A DNA stretch of 63,460 bases, filler included, from Lenisia limosa (taxonomy: Eukaryota; Protista; Breviatea): the NCBI GenBank assembly GCA_001655205.1. It is 10 parts of 10 records of this genome, joined end to end, with 100 filler letters (N's around TTAATTAATTAA, not from the genome) between each part and the next. Parts side by side here need not be neighbours in the genome. Positions count along the whole stretch, not along the records: positions 51,340 to 63,460 come from LPNZ01011701.1; 9 more parts are not named here. One strand, given 5' to 3'. Every line of letters begins with the position of its first letter. Position 1 is the first letter of the stretch. This document shows positions 51,211 through 63,460 of the stretch, in pieces. The translations under genes were made by a program, and so were the position numbers. The notes beneath the pieces were generated by a model. It was not told the origin of the DNA and ran no database searches. It worked only from the letters and a program-made list of their open reading frames with translations.

Positions 51211-51399
51211 ATAAACAAACATAAGAGAACCCCCCCCCCNNNNNNNNNNNNNNNNNNNNNNNNNNNNNNNNNNNNNNNNNNNNTTAATTAATTAANNNNN
51301 NNNNNNNNNNNNNNNNNNNNNNNNNNNNNNNNNNNNNNNGTGTATTCCATACGACTAGCACTTTTTTTTCTATTGTCAATATTGATTGTCATTTGTAAA

Positions 51400-52450
51400 A
51401 GGTCGGAGACTCATCACCATGCGGAAGTCAACGCTGCAATTCGCAAAGAAATTGAATCTTATATTTCGCATTCGTCACAACGGTATGCGCTGGAAAAGTT
51501 CTTCAAACGCACTTCTTTTTCGTATATTTGTTTCGTTTTTGATCTCTTACAGGCCCATTCTTGAACAGAAGTCGTTGAAATTGCTGCCAAGGCTCTCCGC
51601 GCTCCAACATACTCAACAATCAACGCTNNNNNNNNNNNNNNNNNNNNNNNNNNNNNNNNNNNNNNNNNNNNNNNNNNNNNNNNNNNNNNNNNNNNNNNNN
51701 NNNNNNNNNNNNNNNNNNNNNNNNNNNNNNNNNNNNNNNNNNNNNNNNNNNNNNNNNNNNNNNNNNNNNNNNNNNATGGGAAAGCGAAGTGTATCACAGA
51801 TCTTCAAGAATTGAACCCAGAAGGCACTATTGAGTTTGAGCAAGCAGTTGCGCAGCAAACTTCAAGAGCAGTGAGTGATTTTATCAAGGAGGAGGAGTTT
51901 GAGGTATCATCAGATTCTGTAGCATATGCTGAAGGTTTTGCTGCAGCTCTTGCAGCGACGGTGCATCTGCACCCCGAAGTCGCCAGCGACTTATCAAAAC
52001 TAGTATACGCTGCTGCAAATGAAATCCTTCCTTTAGCACCCTTTATTAGTAAGGGTGTCAACTTTGCTGTCAACATTGGTGCAATTACTGAAGATGTCAA
52101 GAAGCCACTGTCGTTTGTATCCTTGTCGCCAACTCAACGTCTTGTGACTCTTGAGCCGGGACAGGTACAATGACCATACTGGGTTGTATTTTCATATGGT
52201 GGTCGAGTTTTGATAATCGTGAGTATATTTATTTAACAGTCCGTGAGCTAACTGAATTTGTTGTAAAGACGTGTGACTTTGACTCCAACAGATTATTGCC
52301 AATCCTGACGACCTCAAGCCCAATGTTGTACGGCAGATGAAGCTTCCCACGTCATAAGGAGAGATAATTTGCTTTGAGACTTGCCTTCGCGCTGGAGGCT
52401 TACCCAAGCTGCAGGATAACCGCCTTAGAAAGCAGAAGGCTGTCTGTTTG
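51400..52450 (+). CDS. Multi-exon hypothetical protein
   Basis: Exons SETHHHAEVNAAIRKEIESY../PILEQKSLKLLPRL../PEGTIEFEQAVAQQTSRAV..VTLEPGQ with GT-AG introns of about 70 nt. Confidence 0.5.
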
Positions 52451-53222
52451 GTTACAGTCTGTTTGTGAGTTATGTATGAATATAAAAATGTCCATTTTTA
52501 TGGGATATGATATCATTAGCAGCATTAACCACAGGTAACTCTGTTTTATAAGGGAAAAAATAATAATCGAAAACACCCAGTGATAAAGTCATTTATCACT
52601 GGGTGTTTTCAATGTTTCAATTTAGCTTTTCCTGAATAAAAACAAGTTGAACTTAGCAAGTTTGTGTAAGAAAATAAAATTCGGAGTTTTGGCGCTCCAG
52701 CATGTATATATCGTATATAATAACATATAATATATAGTAAAATTGGATTTTGTTGACACTCAGGCCGNNNNNNNNNNNNNNNNNNNNNNNNNNNNNNNNN
52801 NNNNNNNNNNNNNNNNNNNNNNNNNNNNNNNNNNNNNNNNNNNNNNNNNNNNNNNNNNNNNNNNNNNNNNNNNNNNNNNNNNNNNNNNNNNNNNNNNNNN
52901 NNNNNNNNNNNNNNNNNNNNNNNNNNNNNNNNNNNNNNAATGACGGGGTTTTGGCGCGGGAGCATAAACAGCAACCTTAACCATTTTTTTAATCTACGTA
53001 TGATATATTATACTGTGTATAATACATGTACAAACAGTATATAACTCTCTTTAGCATTGTATATGATTATGGCTTCTTGGGACTGTAGGGAGGCCTCTAA
53101 TTATATTATATACTATGCTCGCGGTCCTTAATTAGGTCATTAATTGTTATTTTGAGTTTTAAAGCCGCAGAAACCAATTTTTAGCCCAGTTTTCATACCA
53201 CATTCAATTTCTGGGTTGTTTT

Positions 53223-53615
53223 GAGTTTTTCAAAAAAAATTCACGCACAACATTTCGGATGAATTATATGCCTTTTTCAGACTAAAAACGTTAGTGGCAA
53301 TTATAAACGACTCAAATAAATTCAGTGGAATTCAAGGCTAAAAAAAGCAAGTTGCAGATNNNNNNNNNNTTTTTGTCACTACCGAAAGGACTTGCCTTCT
53401 ATGAAAAAAACAACAGAAAATTCCAAAAATCAGTGTTTTATTAATTTTTTACAGGAAAGTGTTGATTTTTTTATCTGCAACTTGCTTTTTTTAGCCTTGA
53501 ATTCCACTGAATTTATTTGAGTCGTTTATAATGGCCACTAACGTTTTTAGTCGGAAAAAGGCATGTAATTCATCCGAAATGTTTTGCGTGAAAAAAATAT
53601 TATTTTTGAAAACTC
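53223..53615. repeat. Long inverted repeat with arms of about 135 bp (foldback/MITE-like, or an assembly artefact)
   Basis: 53223-53359 is near-perfectly complementary to 53473-53615; the spacer contains a 10-N gap. Confidence 0.8.
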
Positions 53616-53948
53616 TAAGATGTGTGTCTTGTAGATCTTTGGAAAGTTGATCCCATCTCCAGCGGTTTTCTACTGGCTCTTCGCCTCCAGCTTGCTGTGT
53701 GCTATTTCAAATACGTTCTCAAAAGCTACTGACATAAACAGTAATACCATAAACGCAAAAGACACAATTAATGAGATACCTTTTGCATGTGGACTATAAA
53801 ATTATATCGGGTGACAAGGTTCAGTTCCTAATTGAGCTGAACTATGCTGTTTATGATATGGTTTATTACTCCAAATGAAACATGATTGCTATAATATCAT
53901 GATAACTAACCTGTGCTTAGCAATCATCAGACCTGCTCCTGCCCCGGC

Positions 53949-54293
53949 TCACCACCTGCAATGCACTATTGATCTGCCCCCCACAGCGGAGAAAAAGTAG
54001 AACACGAAAGTCACGCTATAGTCAATAATACTAAATAGGACTGCATTTTTTACGACTTGGCTAATTGGATAAGAGCATCTCTTGAAATTAATGGCATTTA
54101 TTGCTTTGTGGAGCGCGTTGATCTTGGTTTGAAGATCGTCAACGACGTCCTCCGGCTGAACGGAAACAGAAGTGACGCTATCAGTGTCATCTTGAAGGAA
54201 ATCGCGATACTGGCCTCTGTAGCAAATTGGAACATCTTCGACAGTCAGTAGTTCATCCATAGCAGTAGAAAGACTAATATACATGTACGTCAT
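53949..54293 (-). CDS. Hypothetical ORF or exon with a coiled-coil-like segment
   Basis: 114-aa ORF (..PEDVVDDLQTKINALHKAINAINF..); no recognised family. Confidence 0.3.
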   Translation of the reverse strand: MTYMYISLSTAMDELLTVEDVPICYRGQYRDFLQDDTDSVTSVSVQPEDVVDDLQTKINALHKAINAINFKRCSYPISQVVKNAVLFSIIDYSVTFVFYFFSAVGGRSIVHCRW

Positions 54294-55149
54294 GAAAGGA
54301 AACCGAGGAAAAGTATGAAATAAGAAGAAACCCCAACTAACATATCATATGGACTTGCCTCAGATGGGTCGAAGATCAAAATGTGCCGTCTCCAAGCAAC
54401 TTGTACAAATAAAAGGTCGCGCTTGGTGAATGAGTAGTCTCCGTGAACTGATAACTATACAAATCAAAAGCAATCCCCGGCCCGTCCGACCACAATGTTT
54501 CACTAAATTCAGGTTTGAACATTATTACTATTTATGAGCAACAAATCAGTGATATCATCTTCGTCCAACTCATCTGGATCGACTTCATTCAGTGCTGAGC
54601 AGCTCTCCCATGACTACTTGGTCTTTGTCACTTCCCAAGTCCATCACTCCTTGGAATTGGTCCTAAAACGACAAAATTTAACTGTCACCGACCAGGCGGC
54701 GCGAAATGGGTTCACAGAATGCAAGTTTCACTCCAATCCTGCAGCCATTTCGCATCTGATGGAGATCATGCCAAACGAGAGTTTCAAGCGAACACTGAAG
54801 GGAGGTTTGCAATAATGCGAAGATACAACCTTTTGGGTTTTTATATCTGCTCTTTCCCCTTTAACTGCCCCTTCCTGATCTGATTACAGGTGAAGAAACG
54901 ATTTATCTCGTGAAGATGTCTGATGTGCTATCTTTACTTGGCTGCAGCTACGGGTATGTTCGAATAAAATGGTCAATTATACAATGAAAGGGGATTAATT
55001 TAATCTTCTTCGCCTCTTTCAAGCCTCTTTATCACCTCTTTTTATGCCAGAAGAAGGTCAAGAAAACAACAAGATCAAAAAAAGCGGAGAATTATTACTG
55101 TTCTTCTTTTTCTGTCGGCAACTCTGGCAAATGGAAAGGCAACGCAAAA

Positions 55150-55202
55150 GGAGACCCTCCTCCTTGTCTGAGCAACGTCCTTAGACAAGGAGGAGGGTCT
55201 CC
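55150..55202. other. Perfect 20-bp GC-rich hairpin with 13-nt loop
   Basis: GGAGACCCTCCTCCTTGTCT (55150-55169) pairs with AGACAAGGAGGAGGGTCTCC (55183-55202). Confidence 0.9.
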
Positions 55203-56895
55203 TTTGCTGAAGAAGTCCCAGTTGATACTTTAAACATATTGCTTTCTCTTTAGGCAATCAAATGTAGTTACCTTGGGGGGAGCTATGTTGGTTTTGTAGA
55301 CTATTCTTGATTTACACGTCATCTTTCTTATAGATTTGTGGTTTTATGTGAAGAAAGCCAGTGCTGTAATAGAGGGAAAGTCCTGTGTCAAGGATTATTG
55401 TGAAAATCCGACATGCCCAGCCTGACTATAGAAGCTCTCGTACCCGCGGCGGTTCCACTTGAGGAGCTAGATCAGCAGTAACACTTGGTAGGTCTCGTCT
55501 TTGTAAAATATTGTTGGCCATTCTGCAATTTGGACTTAACAAGTGTAAATAAATTTGACAAATGTGGGTAAAAAGATCTGTTGGGCTGACAGAGGATTTT
55601 AACCGCTGACCTCAAATACACCTTAGGGTTACGAAGACCTAAGGATTATTTGAGGCGCCCCTCTGGAAACTATATGTACTATGTGAAGTAATCAAAGGAA
55701 TGGTGGGTAGGGATTTAAATAAATATCACAACTTCCATGGAGGTAAATTGATCACTAGATGGGGATCCGAGGTGACACTGCCCAAGAAGTTCAGCCAAAA
55801 CTGCAATTCGCAAAAAAAAGTCCATCGTTTTGTCGCTACAAGTGCCTGGTGTCATCGTCCAACTCTGAAGATCTTGACGTTTTGTGATTTTTTACAATGT
55901 TTTATGATGATATACGAAGTACTACTTAACCTGTAGATTTTGCATATTTTGAAAATGTTTTGAGGGAATATTTTGAGAAAAGATACGGGTAAATTTAAGT
56001 TCTCACGAGAGTTGTCGTGAAAAATCATCAATTCACGGTAAAAAAATGGCCGCCTATTTCAACAGTCAATTACCTCCATAAAACTTCACTAAACTACAAT
56101 ATTAACATGGGATTACATTGAACAAAATTCCATCTCCGAGGTTTTTTTTCCTGCTGACACAGATTTTCTCCTTAAGTTAATTTTTGGAAGTGTTGCAGAA
56201 AGTTGCACACTATATTATTTATCAAGAATCAATAAATACATCGATTTTACTGAGGTTTGAGGTCAAAATCTTGGGAAAAATTTAGGGTCTTCAATTTGTC
56301 TAAAAAATGTTGAAATAAAAACCTGTAAATAATGAGAAACTTTTTTCGAAATTGTTTATTTGACCTGCAATGACAACCTGAACCTACGTTACTTTTTACA
56401 ATAACCTCAAATAATTCACCAAAAATGACTATGATTTTGCTCCTGCGAAATAGAGCTTTCATCTCTCAAATCATTACGTCACCGTTGACTAATTATTTAG
56501 AGTGACCTTGCTCGATTTGGAGCCTTTGCAAGTATTCAACAATGCCCTATCTTTGTCCAAGCAACTGGGGAACCTACTGGTCTCGTACCTCAATAAAATT
56601 GGTTTATAAAGGCTATTAAATGGAGTCTATTTATGTTATGCGATTACTGTCGTTACATTAATTACATGATTATTTGGAACTGAGGTCTACCTACCCCCTC
56701 CTCCCGGGGTTTGAAAATGAAATAATGGTCGCCTCCCCTCCCCCCATAAAAAAAGCAGCTGACTGGGATATGGGGTTTTCTTTTGAGAGTAAGGAAAACA
56801 TAAAAGCAGTCGGATCACGAGCCAGCCTGTGTAGTTTTAAAATTCTTCGTCAAAGAATGATTTGAATGATGCATTGATTTTAAATTAGTTTTATT

Positions 56896-57053
56896 TAGCT
56901 ACTGACATTAACATGAATACCTGACAGTGTGAGACTGAGGAAAATCTCTTCAAACCCCATCACATCACAACAAAAAGGAGGGTCTCCTTTTGCGTTGCCT
57001 TTCCATTTGCCAGAGTTGCCGACATAGCTACTGACATTAACATGAATACCTGA
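56896..57053. repeat. 100-bp insert flanked by a perfect 29-bp direct repeat
   Basis: TAGCTACTGACATTAACATGAATACCTGA at 56896-56924 and 57025-57053; about 48 bp of the insert is the reverse complement of 55113-55160. Confidence 0.85.
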
Positions 57054-57959
57054 TATAGTCAAAACTGTTGTTAAAGCGATCCAACTAATGGTATATTTTT
57101 GAACTCNNNNNNNNNNNNNNNNNNNNNNNNNNNNNNNNNNNNNNNNNNNNNNNNNNNNNNNNNNNNNNNNNNNNNNNNNNNNNNNNNNNNNNNNNNNNNN
57201 NNACACTATATATTTAAAGAGTACAACTCTTGATGTCAAATCGAGAGATGTATTGTATAGCCATCCCAAGAACCAAATATTTTTGAACAAATCAAAAACC
57301 TTTAAATTAAAAACTGTTTTAATCCCCATACTGAAGACACTACAACCACAGCGTAAATTTAAGTCGTTTATTGAAGACCTAAATGCTTAATTGAATTGAA
57401 TACAATGGTAAAGAGCAGATATGTATGTGGTCAACAAATATCTCAATTTGTGTTATCATATTACCAGAGAGTTAGTTCCTTAAGAATTAATGCAAAATAG
57501 AGGTAAGAATTATCATTTTATGGTGATAAATATGATCAAAAACACAACCGCACTAACTTTGGTCCGGTGGCGGCTCAATTAAGCGGCTCAATTTTAAGAG
57601 CCAGGAAATGCACTTCTTTTCAAATGGATGAAACGATGAGTTATAGGGAAGCTTTGTCTTGAAGAATAGCAAAAAATAAAGTCTAAAAGTTCCAAAATTA
57701 TCTAAGAGGGGTGTTGAGTAAAAACAATATTGGTGAAAAGGGAAATGAACTGAACTGTGAACTGAACTTTTTTGAAACAATAATTTTTTCTGGATTGTTC
57801 TATTTATGCAATCAAAAGTAAGATATTACGTGGTGAGAAGGTCCTGTTATAGATCAAAAATCAAAACCGACACCAAATCACTAAGTCAAGTACTTACTCC
57901 TCGAGGATACACAAATACACGCCAAATACCAGCTTGAAACAACCCAGTCCACATGGTAT

Positions 57960-58445
57960 TTCTCATATCGAATAGGCAGCATCTTCCTTTGCCTCGTTGA
58001 ATGCCTCAAAAGAGATTGACTCGACGTGATAGCCTGTAATGCCGTCTTGAGTGACCTTCGGGGTAGCCTAAATATCGGTTAATATAAAAAAATTAGACGA
58101 CCAAGTCACATGAGGTCTTACATTTATTCCGTCGGGAACTTTGAGGTCGGTAGTTGTACGATGGCATTCAACGGGTGGCGAGGATTTCAATTCCGTTGGA
58201 TGAAAATGGCGAAACACCATATCCATCTTATCAACAGGAGGAGCACGCCATGTATACATTATTGTTGTATGAGTCAACTCCAAGTTGGTGCTTCTACTAT
58301 CGATTTGGCCGTTCCTGAGGGGTTTGGGGTAATATATTGTTTGGCATCTATATTTATCCTGAGTTTTACTAATCGGTGACAGTCCGCTGAAAATGATGAA
58401 AACCTGATGGTCTTTCTGTGTGTTGATACCGATGTGGTTGCTCAC
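57960..58445 (-). CDS. Hypothetical ORF or exons
   Basis: 125-aa ORF plus a downstream AG-preceded exon ATPKVTQDGITGYHVESISFEAF; no recognised family. Confidence 0.25.
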
Positions 58446-60602
58446 GCTAAGCTAAAGTTCAGGTTAGCGATGAAAAAAAGGTATTTTTCTTTTTCTTCTT
58501 TTTCTTCCTCCTGATACCGATATCACATTAATCGTTTTGATGATTTCAAAAATATAGATATTATATCATGGTTCTAATGTTATCTTTTTTTTGCCAGATC
58601 AAATCCTCTTCAAAATTTCCGCAGTTGCTATATTTGGTCCTTCACTTTCATCTCTACCTTTTTCGAATATATTATTCTTTATATTGCTTCCTTCTCTTTT
58701 GACCTAAAACAATGAAAATTGTATGTGCAGCAATTGAAATGGGTACCATTAAAATGGGCTGCAGCAAAAACAACATGACCATCCTAACCTGCTCAAAGAA
58801 ACGCATCTGATCGGGGCGCTCCAACCTTCGACCCAGCTCTTGTCCACAGCGTCGGTGAGGACATTACGTAGTTCTTGGACGCGAAGGGTGGAGAATGAGA
58901 CTAGAACCTTGCGAATTAGTCTTGCTGCGTTTTTAGGGCATTAGCCTTGTAATAGTGGGTGTCTAGGAGATCCTTAAACTCGGCGACAGGGATATAACAC
59001 ACGATGGCAACAGAAGAGTCACAAAACCCGGTGGATCGCACAAATTTGGGAGCTCAAACTCCGCTTCAAGCAGTACATTACTGAGTAAACGGATTAACCG
59101 GTTTGAAACCCCGTACAAGATAACAGCGCCCTCGCAGAGTCCCTGACTGCAGCTGCCGTAGTTGCCCCAATAATGTATTGTTCCACGTGCAATATAAACC
59201 GGCTACGTCACACTCCTATATGGCAACACCCCAGGACCATTCCAATCTCGGTTTAAGATCAAAGAGCCCAGGCGACAGACTTCAGAAGAAAAATACTTGG
59301 TGATCTTTAGGATGATCAAAGCTCCAGATTCAGTGCATCTTTAGCTTTCTGTTTAGCAGTGATTTAGAAAGAAAAAAAAAAAAAAAATTGTTGCCGAAAA
59401 CTGTCCACCCCAGGCCCAAAAGCGTATAAACTAGGTTACAACAATTAATTGGACTCCCGCTTTAAAGGTATTTATTTTTTTTGAAAAACAGGACGACCAT
59501 GGGATTTTCTGTGACACGGAATTTGTGGGATTTGGACGTTGATTCCAAGTTGATCCAAGGAGGAGTATAGATGAGGAAGGGGACACCAAGTTTTTTGGAC
59601 GCCCTATTTAGTCCAGTTTGTCGGAAGCTTTCTTTCGGAAGGAATTTTTCAGGGAAATGTTGATATTGCATGTTATTTCAACGTTATTTGGACAATTTGT
59701 CATTAGTAAAATAAGCAAGGTGGATCAATAGTACTACAAGCCTGCAGAGCTCCCATAAAGCTCATCTTTACGATTGATAAGGCTATACAAGCTTTCTTTC
59801 TTCTTATACCAACCTTTATTTCACAGAGATACAAATATTTAAATATTCAGCAGCGTTTATTTGACTAATGATCATCATTTTTTCAAACTTTCAAGAATGA
59901 AATTGGTCAGAGTAGCCTATTAAATGACATTTCTTTCCCCCAATTCCAATCCCTCCAAAGTTGCAAGTAGAGTATTTTAGGAATATAAAAAAAAAGTTGG
60001 TGTCCCCATATGTAATATCTATTCTCCTCGATCGGGGCTCGACGTCTCATTTTTGTGAATTACTGTTTCTATGCCTCAAGTTTTCCTGACTGTGGGAACG
60101 GTTTTCATTTACCTCCATGTTTTTTCTGGCCCTAATAGTTTTTTCCTGGAAGCTTGATTGATCCCCTTGCATGGTGGACACATCTAGGACATATCGCATG
60201 GGTCCCAAACCGAAAACCCTGAAATCGAAGAATCCAATACCCGGCATTCTGGGAAACTATTAAATCTTTTATAAAAGGTTCTGGATTTAAACCTCCCATT
60301 TCAACTTTAGCCTTTCCGAGACAAAAATCTCATACCCGTATTTTCCATCAATAATATTGATATTTAGGAGCAAGTTCAGTAAAGCGAGGTTGAGAAGAAA
60401 ATCGTATTTTCCTTGTGTTTGCAGAAACTATCTTTTGAAAATAGCAAGAGTAGGAGATATCTCCACTTGAAGGAACCAATCACAAGCAACTTTCCAAGCC
60501 TTCCCTCCCCACTTATGATATTAAGTCAAATTCCCCACTTGAAACTTAATAACAATGTTGAAACTTCAAAGAAACAAACAGCCAAGAAACAAACAGAATT
60601 GC

Positions 60603-61738
60603 TTAAAAATGATATACAACGCAGTCTCCCCCAGAGAGTCCAACAATCAAATAGTCTCAAACATAATAAAACCGAAAAGAACCTATTCAAAACCAAAGCG
60701 AGAGGTTGTTGCCTCATTAAAATTTTTGAAATTTCGTGAGAGCTTTCAAACTCAAAAATACAAAATAAGAACAAAACAAAGAAAACTAAACATGCTGCTC
60801 TCCACATACAATAAAAATTGGAAGAATAGGGTGACATCGCACCAAAGTGAAACAGTCATCCAGCAATTTTGTCCATAGCAAATCAAGAGATTTGTTAAAT
60901 ACAGAGATACTTCCATTTAATGAGACTGCAGCTGAAAAAGTAGTTGAAATACAGTTAAATTAAGAAGTCAAACCAAGCTACATCCTCAACCAAAAAGGGA
61001 AGAGAAACTCTATGAGGAACATTGGTGACTAACATGTCAAAGAGAAACATTCCATGATCTCCAGCAATTAAGATACTGTTTGCAATGAAATCAAAACAGG
61101 AAATATTCACCCTAAATTTCAAAAGAGGAAGAGAATCGCCCCACAAAAACAACTCATTTTCATCAAATGTGATGATCATTTCGCTGAAAATTTCACCTCC
61201 AATCACAGGCAAAGAGTGAAAATGTTCAGCAAGAATCTCACAGTTAAATAAAGTCACTTTGGCAGAACAATCCTGCCCTCCAGCAAGAAATCTGTCTTCC
61301 CTACTCCAACGTAAAAACTAACTAAGTATAAACATTGAACATTTACTTCATCTGAAAAAATCATTCTATTTGATAGTATTTTATCCAGTGGAAAATTATA
61401 AACAGAAACAAGGCCATTCATGTCAACAGAAGCAAGGTAACTTCCGCATCTAGAAAAACTCAGAATGGATACACTTTCTGTATGTATGTCATTAATTGTT
61501 TTGAAAACATCACCATTTATATAATCCCAAATCAAAACATTTTCACCTTCTCCACCTGAAGCAACCAACGGGAGATTTGGGTGAAGTGATATTGCAAATA
61601 TTGAAGCAAATGAAGAATAACAGAAAAACCTCCATGCTCCGAAAACATAAGAGATTCCTTTAACTGCTCATCACTCTTATCTGAAGAAGGCTTAACTGAA
61701 GTTAAAGATATTACTTCGTCACCACTACTCAAACTCAT
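60603..61738 (-). CDS. AAMP: AAMP/Sqt1-like WD40 protein (uL16/Rpl10 chaperone family), 340 aa after removing five 20-25-nt introns
   Basis: Exons 61738-61630, 61606-61341, 61317-60974, 60951-60792, 60771-60683, 60657-60603 total 1023 nt with consistent phases. FSEHGASIFAISLHPNLPLVASGGEGENVLIWD..HTESVSILSFSRCGSYLASVDMNGLVSVY..DEVNFLRWS..FLAGG parallels the recalled AAMP/Sqt1 motifs (F..H.ASVFCVSLDP...TGGEDDKAFVW, H.DSV....FS.D...ATGDMSG, LEWMEWHP). Confidence 0.75.
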
Positions 61739-62789
61739 TTTACACCCCTGAACCCCTGAACAGCGCACACCAAGCCTGCACCCAAACCCAACCCTTGGAG
61801 GTTGGGGTGGTCCTAGGTATTATAGGATTCCGGAACGAAAAGTTCCGAAACTTCAAAAAGGGACTATGTTCCTTGGCCACGTTCAAACTTATTTAACAAT
61901 ATTAATTCACAAGATAAGTTCGCCACAAGGTCCCTCTGAACCAACCAGAGGCTACTTTGGCGCGAGCGACCGGTTTGTTTCAATCCAGAAATGAATATCG
62001 TATTTTGACTGGTTTTTTGGTGTAATTTATAGAATGGGTCATAGAGGCACAGTAATTTCGTAAATGGGGATCCGAGGTAATTGACTAGATGTTAAAATTG
62101 TCCGCACGTTCTCCACTGGCATCATTTTCATCATCTAGAGGATGAGACGGTTGGAAAAGAAGTCGAAATAAGAAAAATAGTAGTGATAATTTAGTGGACT
62201 GCTGAATTTATCAATGCAATATTCCCTTTGATACTTGGTGGTTATTTTCGATTTCAAACGTAATCACAATATGATGACAAATCATCCGATTCATAGCTAA
62301 AGGACCTCATGCTAAGAACCTTTGAGTTAGTGCTATTTCTCCAAATTTTGAAATTACTTTTAAATCAATTTCAAGGATTCCAAATTAGTGACAACTAGTT
62401 GACAAAAGGTGTTTCATTGCAACAAGTCCCCACCCACCACAAGGTATTTGGATAGTTCTGGANNNNNNNNNNNNNNNNNNNNNNNNNNNNNNNNNNNNNN
62501 NNNNNNNNNNNNNNNNNNNNNNNNNNNNNNNNNNCCACAGTCGCTTATTTTCCAAGATGAGTCCATCTGGCGATATTCCCATAAACTACTGGTGGTCCCA
62601 GGACGCTACTGGTGCTGTCACAAGCCCACATAGGATGAACTAGGCCAATTAAAGCTCTCCCAAAAGAAAACAAAATAAATTAATGATACATGTTCAAAAA
62701 ATGATCAAAACAGATGACATGTATAACAATTATCACAACAATGTTAAAAATCTATGAATGACAAAATGTAGAAAACATATTCAGTACTG

Positions 62790-63460
62790 CTCACCTTTGC
62801 AGAGGGGCGGCCTTCATAAACTTGGTGATAAAAGTGAGCAAACCGCTCGGCTCATTATCTGTTCCATGCTTCAGGATGGCATCTTTGTCAAATTGATTTG
62901 GGGCGTAGAGAAGCAGTTGCGTCAGGTAGAGGCTTTGTATCCTTGGTTTTTTGAAGAACCTTATCGAGGTTGGTCTTTCGACGTTTGATATCGGCAATAT
63001 CACGAGGAGACGCATTGTATGGGTGGTAAATTCCATTTGGCATTGACCTGGCCTTTGCCATGGCAGCGTGGATTTTCTTTCGTTCTTCAACTAAAGTAAA
63101 GGCAGAAACTCGCAAAATATCAGGGACAAAACTTGCTGTTATCCTCAGGAACCGACCAAGTAACCACATTCTTTCTCCTTGGATTGAACATATTAGCTCT
63201 GTCGTGGCACTCATACTCATGTTTTGGAACATTTCTTGTCCGAGGCGATAGCATAATTTCGGTGGCTGTACATGATCAGGGTTGCGAATGGGCGTCGGTT
63301 CAGGAGCCAGGCATCGTAATGGAAGAGGTGGCTTCGGCGCCGGCGGGGAAGAAACGATTTTGGTGATAATACGAGGATCGCCAAAACCAGGGGGGAGGTA
63401 ATCTTCATCATCATCTTCATTGGAATCTGACTGGTCATCGCTACTTGGTTCTTCTTGACA
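62790..63460 (-). CDS. Multi-exon hypothetical protein with acidic and Pro-rich stretch, partial
   Basis: CQEEPSSDDQSDSNEDDDEDYLPPGFGDPRIITKIVSSPPAPKPPLP..QEMFQNM, followed by a 39-nt GT-AG intron with a GCTAAT branch-like motif. Confidence 0.5.

Follow-up and report, generated by a model that had tools for sequence, protein, structure and literature searches.

Five ultra-short introns, four of them without a 3′ AG, in an expressed WD40 gene of the breviate Lenisia limosa

Gene structure and protein family

The window analysed here is a stretch of 63,460 nt, filler included, from the Lenisia limosa assembly GCA_001655205.1, in which ten parts of ten records are joined end to end; positions count along this stretch, and its last piece (51,340-63,460) comes from LPNZ01011701.1. 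On the minus strand of this piece, from 61738 to 60603, lies a WD40 gene whose coding frame is spread over all three reading frames, as the initial annotation had reported. The exons and introns are defined by gaps in an assembled RNA contig and, where named, by a second transcript contig, L001 (both described below).

Exon 1: 61630..61738, minus strand, 109 nt; ATG at 61738-61736, phase 1 at its end; RNA contig colinear over 61850-61630.
Intron 1: 61629-61607, minus strand, 23 nt, GTTTTT...CATTTG (GT..TG); missing from the RNA contig but kept in the DNA contig.
Exon 2: 61341..61606, minus strand, 266 nt; holds the best conserved WD repeats.
Intron 2: 61340-61318, minus strand, 23 nt, GTTCAA...AGTTAG (GT..AG); absent from the RNA contig and L001.
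Exon 3: 60974..61317, minus strand, 344 nt; divergent propeller blades.
Intron 3: 60973-60949, minus strand, 25 nt, GTTTGA...CTGTAT (GT..AT); absent from the RNA contig and L001.
Exon 4: 60787..60948, minus strand, 162 nt; placed by the RNA contig, L001 and translation.
Intron 4: 60786-60761, minus strand, 26 nt, GTTTTC...ATTTTG (GT..TG); absent from the RNA contig and L001.
Exon 5: 60683..60760, minus strand, 78 nt; placed by the RNA contig, L001 and translation.
Intron 5: 60682-60658, minus strand, 25 nt, GTTCTT...TGTTTG (GT..TG); absent from the RNA contig and L001.
Exon 6, coding part: 60603..60657, minus strand, 55 nt; TAA at 60605-60603.

When joined and translated, the six exons yield exactly the transcriptome protein P0151 (337 aa) from a spliced CDS of 1014 nt whose frame is intact across all 337 codons, and the transcript continues beyond the TAA stop at least to 60583, the point to which L001 is colinear. 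The ORF originally predicted from the genomic sequence (1023 nt, 340 aa) does not match this CDS; its product carried one extra I and read FLFC where the real protein has VY.

Judged by its sequence matches, the product is a member of the WD40 beta-propeller proteins: the whole protein matches the Pfam WD40 family (E=8e-12) along with many other propeller families. Matches in Pfam and among PDB sequences were of the generic WD40 kind and fell mostly within residues 30-140, and exon 3 alone had no match among PDB sequences. A phmmer search of PDB sequences placed WDR5, LIS1 and designed propellers first, and Sqt1 was not among the best 60 matches. The ten best clusters in an ESM-atlas feature search were all AAMP (0.95-0.96); these clusters measure 264-454 aa, nine of them at least 372 aa, against 337 aa here. 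A word-indexed homologue search with the protein returned nothing but the protein itself, and a single-sequence AlphaFold model (pLDDT 36) was unusable. Thus, the WD40 part of the AAMP/Sqt1 assignment made in the initial annotation was borne out by the spliced product, while the protein is possibly AAMP/Sqt1-like, a label that is a reasonable lead from the language-model match only.

Transcript and DNA contigs

We placed Logan contigs from two runs (X1 and X2) of one 2016 study on positions 57500-63460. The evidence is at the level of assembled contigs rather than single reads, and rare variants drop out of contigs. Run X1 covered genes and spacers alike at ~42x and therefore behaves as DNA. 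Its 1998-nt contig over the locus (59853-61850, depth 42) has 0 differences from the window and keeps all five segments. Run X2, a polyA RNA-Seq library with a metatranscriptomic flag, covered nothing but the gene within 57500-63460 apart from short repeat matches. RNA depth was zero across the flanks (57500-60484 and 62077-63460) except for a repeat at ~59298-59355, indicating an RNA library without DNA carry-over. The RNA contig of the gene (1129 nt, word depth 148.9, 60630-61850) differs from the window by exactly five deletions, at 60658 (25 nt), 60761 (26 nt), 60949 (25 nt), 61318 (23 nt) and 61607 (23 nt), with no mismatch and 0 other letters. No deleted form was found among the DNA contigs of X1 for any of the five segments. 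Both assemblies, DNA and RNA, break at 61850. The five segments are removed from the transcript precisely and, as far as assembled RNA goes, completely, and the proposal of genuine very short introns in this gene is upheld.

Searched in full with phmmer, exon 2 had a single close match, P0001, all others being generic multi-repeat WD40 proteins. EukProt lists P0001 under EP01086 Lenisia limosa, together with P0151 and P0152 from the same cluster, all three being Trinity proteins, and P0153 comes from an ENA assembly. The label of these proteins, the date of the two runs and the mixed-culture flag of the library are consistent with the 2016 co-culture study of Lenisia and Arcobacter. Dicyemids and myxozoans, plausible as source organisms given a GC content of 37%, introns of ~25 nt and many repeats, were set aside because the spliced product is identical to a Lenisia limosa transcriptome protein, and mikrocytids because their introns measure 16-17 nt and are sequence-conserved. 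P0001 (EukProt Lenisia limosa P002196) ends in GRRKSVV, which is translated Illumina adapter joined at 60630, and the same adapter chimera, at the same position, forms the loose end of the RNA contig from Logan. We therefore regard the EukProt assembly as built from the same reads as X2 and count the two as one source; the true C-terminus is that of P0151, not that of P0001. The ENA contig L001 (ERZ25043465; 826 nt, coverage 1) spans 61508-60583 and has the same junctions for introns 2-5, along with a T>C difference of its own and one homopolymer slip, and is probably, though not certainly, independent of the X2 reads. At the protein level, the intron 3 junction reads VAC/STTF in P0001, P0151, P0152 and P0153, and the intron 4 junction reads EQHV/YIFEF in all transcript proteins.

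P0152 (Trinity isoform i3) reads ...SHEISNFNEATTSRFGFE on the minus strand at 60730-60745, where a run of five A is two bases short and the frame shifts; this is probably an assembly or slippage error rather than a splice variant.

It is very improbable that the five deletions are artefacts, whether of template switching by reverse transcriptase, assembler error, RNA derived from an intronless paralogue or a retrocopy, or errors that turned AG into TG in the genome assembly. All evidence does come from assembled contigs rather than single reads, as such an explanation would prefer. Nevertheless, microhomology at the junctions is only 0-1 nt whereas template switching needs longer repeats, the five deletions together restore one frame and the exact transcriptome protein, the DNA contigs hold no deleted form, and the second (ENA) assembly is concordant. 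Moreover, the TG and AT bases at the intron ends were reproduced by an independent re-assembly of the DNA run, with no variant recorded at those places, and are therefore not assembly errors.

Other features of the piece

Exact look-ups of window ORFs, P0001 and P0151 gave no match that would supply a second gene with both DNA and RNA, homologue searches returned P0001 or nothing, and a JGI metagenome scan found no relative. Among the ten longest ORFs of the piece, Pfam gave only a sub-threshold match to CorA. A run of N at 51629-51775 is a scaffold gap inside the piece, so ORFs that span it are not real. An ORF of 120 aa at 51811-52173 has a coding-like composition, and just downstream of it, at 52219-52239 on the plus strand, a 21-nt segment (GTGAGT...TTAACAG) looks like a candidate for a canonical tiny intron; no homologue was found for this candidate region.

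Several repeats are present. At 53240-53592 lies a long inverted repeat with two 120-nt arms that are 97% complementary and 113 nt apart, with the look of a hairpin or MITE. Inverted repeats of 55 nt (55113-55167 and 56970-57024, 96% complementary) flank ~1.8 kb, as the terminal repeats of a DNA transposon would, and a 26-nt perfect-like palindrome lies in the left arm (55147-55205). This palindrome produces the only Rfam matches, weak hairpin ones at 55142-55209 (mir-368, below threshold, both strands). The stretches 59291-59489, 62475-62673 and 62873-63460 have DNA contig depths of 140-440x, against 42x for the gene, and many partly matching contigs, and are therefore multi-copy repeats. An open frame of 190 aa on the minus strand (62891-63460) is cut short by the end of the piece and has no RNA cover; Pfam gave no match for a 114-aa part of it (62888-63232). 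At positions 61821-61850, 61939-61970 and 59298-59355, the overlap with other abundant RNA contigs (depths 16-237) is limited to 30-58 nt, such that the short repeats just upstream of the gene belong to other transcripts as well.

Intron boundaries and 3′ ends

We listed every equivalent gap placement for each intron. Introns 2, 3 and 4 each allow a single placement; for introns 1 and 5 the only freedom is a shift of 1 nt, which would turn both into GG..TT and bring them no closer to canonical ends. The 5′ end is GT in all five introns (in three of the five if the sliding introns 1 and 5 are read as GG..TT), and GTT in each case, such that the GTT start described in the initial annotation holds at the RNA-defined boundaries. 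The 3′ ends are TG in three introns, AG in one and AT in one; four of the five thus lack a terminal AG. Since introns 3 and 4 can be placed in only one way, at least one AT and one TG intron are non-AG whatever the alignment.

Placements that would make the four non-AG gaps canonical were also sought, and no placement of any of them gives GT..AG. There is no AG within 50 nt downstream of intron 1.

These boundaries modify the original description in several respects. The coordinates given there for introns 1, 2 and 5 are exact, but those for introns 3 and 4 were misplaced: according to the RNA contig, intron 3 is 60949-60973 (25 nt, GT..AT) rather than 60952-60973 (22 nt, GT..TG), and intron 4 is 60761-60786 (26 nt, GT..TG) rather than 60772-60791 (20 nt). 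Correspondingly, the single AG intron had been recognized correctly, as had the lack of AG in most introns, but the count of four TG ends was too high. TG as a rule fails at intron 3, which ends in AT and bypasses a TG 3 nt upstream. Alternatives in which the gene is a pseudogene, the bases are sequencing errors or the boundaries are canonical likewise fail. The observation is real and beyond chance, and the original one is confirmed in part: its most surprising element holds once the coordinates and the count of 3′ ends are corrected.

Potential acceptor dinucleotides are skipped in three introns. In intron 2 an AG at 19 nt is passed over and the second, at 23 nt, is used; in intron 3 a TG at 22 nt is passed over and AT at 25 nt is used; and in intron 5 a TG at 21 nt is passed over. 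These skipped sites argue against a pure dinucleotide rule.

Could this gene be a mere oddity, an outlier or decaying copy with cryptic non-AG acceptors in a genome whose tiny introns are ordinarily GT..AG, so that no general 3′ rule follows? We studied only one gene and it was selected for its oddity, and the piece also contains the canonical-looking 21-nt candidate at 52219-52239 (GTGAGT...AACAG). Against this, expression of the gene is strong (depth 149), its frame is intact over 337 codons, the same junctions occur in all transcript isoforms, and, if the genome-wide rate of non-AG introns were low, a single gene would be very unlikely to have four of them among its five introns. We therefore consider this explanation unlikely.

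Intron composition, putative branch point and structure

Intron lengths (23, 23, 25, 26 and 25 nt) are narrowly distributed and all below 30 nt, for five introns of one gene. None of the five is a multiple of three, so retention of any intron shifts the frame: retention of introns 1, 2, 3 and 4 brings a stop at codon 69, 154, 246 and 294, respectively, and retention of intron 5 causes a frameshift. The introns are 61% T and 14% A, compared to 38% T in the exons. The base after GTT is T or C in all five, giving a 5′ motif of GTTY rather than the usual GTRAGT.

Counting back from the 3′ junction, all five introns have an A at -5 to -7; measured from the 5′ end, this A lies at 18-21 nt. In intron 4 it stands at -6 and is the only A of the whole intron. 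The contexts of this putative branch A (CTTCA, CTTAG, TTAAC, CTTAT and ATTAT) loosely fit yTnAy. When intron interiors were shuffled, 5.5% of shuffles (P ~0.055) gave an A in all five introns within some 3-wide window, and the pattern in these sequences is thus weak and only suggestive of a branch point.

We also folded the introns with 10-nt flanks and found no stable structure joining intron ends (z-scores -1.38 to +1.24); intron 4 formed no structure whatever. The lack of a structure that joins the ends argues against a structure-guided mechanism of the euglenid type. More broadly, excision might follow a non-spliceosomal route, either by endonuclease and ligase (as for tRNA or XBP1/HAC1) or guided by structure as in euglenids, which would explain the missing AG. 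The four non-AG ends, the GTTY motif in place of GTRAGT and the fact that a branch consensus is not established are all in keeping with such a route. It is nonetheless quite unlikely, because GT begins all five introns, their T-richness is like that of pyrimidine-rich spliceosomal introns, folding yielded no conserved hairpin or end-pairing, the defined stem-loops that IRE1- or tRNA-type sites need are absent, and the narrow lengths resemble those of known tiny spliceosomal introns (PMC10245619, PMC13644364).

A proposed mechanism

The explanation that we favour, and consider likely as a whole, is that an expressed nuclear gene at this locus encodes a divergent WD40 propeller protein and that its five segments are ultra-short introns of the spliceosomal type, in which the GT start is fixed while the 3′ end may differ from AG. 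We infer a spliceosomal origin because of the GT start, the pyrimidine richness, lengths in the same class as those of known tiny-intron lineages and the absence of structural signals of another kind.

Under this explanation, a U2-type spliceosome that has lost the need for AG at its second step would excise the introns. The first step might be fixed by the 5′ GT together with a branch adenosine ~18-21 nt downstream, and the 3′ junction might then be chosen mainly by distance, either 5-7 nt after the branch A or as measured from the 5′ end, within so narrow a window that the site would be selected by where it lies and not by its sequence. A terminal G would be favoured but not obligatory. In structures of the exon-ligation spliceosome, the G residues at the two ends of the intron are paired with each other, and the penultimate A is paired with the branch A. 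An intron-terminal G could still pair with the 5′ G here as in those known exon-ligation structures, such that GT..TG introns would retain the G-G contact and lose the contact between A and branch A, whereas a GT..AT intron would lose the G-G contact. Intron 3 ends in T, so the proposed G-G pairing is broken there. Support for this mechanism comes from five introns of one gene.

A wider reading is that the AG rule has been abandoned throughout the genome of L. limosa, and perhaps in breviates generally, with introns mostly of ~23-26 nt that start with GTT and end at a set distance from either the branch point or the 5′ site. We give this reading about an even chance.

Significance

The 3′ AG of introns is among the most conserved signals of eukaryotic gene expression and is read twice, early by U2AF and at exon ligation by the catalytic centre. 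With a natural, well expressed gene in which four of five introns lack AG and all are shorter than 27 nt, the way in which the second step finds its site becomes directly testable, and U2AF1, Slu7, Prp18, Prp22 and Prp8 are the splicing factors of interest. Ultra-short introns also gain a new carrier lineage that is neither parasitic nor ciliate.

Gene predictors limited to GT..AG introns of at least 30 nt would break most genes of such a genome, and this annotation problem bears on gene absences reported for Lenisia, whose genome and transcriptome have been described as highly fragmented (10.64898/2026.01.29.702055). If the genome-wide reading is true, Lenisia, whose free-living lineage lies at the base of Obazoa, would have solved intron recognition in a third and independent way, besides canonical GT..AG and the non-canonical tunicate system, and its current gene models and proteomes would be systematically wrong wherever GT..AG was assumed.

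Comparison with known systems

Introns shorter than 30 nt have been described in ciliates, microsporidia, dicyemids and myxobolid myxozoans (PMC13644364), as well as in mikrocytids, heterotrich ciliates and a chlorarachniophyte nucleomorph (PMC10245619), and dicyemid tiny introns have very weak 5′ motifs (PMC2483917, PMC2222250, PMC6543705). This cited literature on tiny introns (PMC13644364, PMC10245619, PMC2483917, PMC2222250, PMC6543705) reports GT..AG only and includes neither non-AG ends nor breviates. A search of literature that mentions Lenisia, which did not extend to the original genome paper and its supplement (PMC4900452), found nothing on its introns or splicing. Tiny introns as such are therefore known, and non-AG ends among them are new relative to the cited GT..AG reports, a comparison that leaves aside the supplement of the original genome paper.

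The closest likenesses are to Paramecium (~25 nt), dicyemids (~25-27 nt) and myxobolid myxozoans (22-27 nt), which share with the Lenisia gene its length class, narrow spread and many introns per gene, in addition to a weak 5′ motif past GT and no clear branch consensus (PMC2222250, PMC2483917, PMC6543705, PMC13644364). Introns in those three groups are GT(A)..AG, however, whereas in the Lenisia gene the third base is T in five of five and the 3′ end is non-AG in four of five. The host, a free-living anaerobic breviate, also belongs to a lineage that PMC13644364 and PMC10245619 do not name among the carriers of introns under 30 nt. Heterotrich ciliates (15-16 nt), mikrocytids (16-17 nt) and the Bigelowiella natans nucleomorph (18-21 nt) show the same extreme shortening and tight length window (PMC10245619), but their introns are shorter and sequence-conserved with canonical ends, while those of Lenisia measure 23-26 nt and vary at the 3′ end. 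Such shortening within a tight window suggests that spliceosome geometry limits the position of the 3′ site (PMC10245619).

A large-scale escape from GT/AG, with introns still removed, is described for the tunicates Fritillaria borealis and Oikopleura in PMC13326754, in which the authors link it to divergent U2AF function and changed snRNA modification. Those are animal genomes, whereas in the Lenisia gene GT is kept in five of five introns (three of five with the slide) and only the 3′ end varies. Non-canonical introns of tunicates are also longer. The nonconventional introns of euglenids are similar in that their terminal dinucleotides are not fixed. They depend, however, on pairing between the intron ends, while the Lenisia introns have no such end-pairing (z-scores -1.4 to +1.2) and a constant 5′ GT.

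Finally, rare TG and other non-AG acceptors, together with yeast 3′ splice-site mutants that are rescued by prp8 alleles, show that ligation at UG is possible when fidelity is relaxed. Such acceptors and mutants are minor alternatives or poorly efficient, whereas the non-AG ends in this well expressed Lenisia gene are the major and apparently the sole form.
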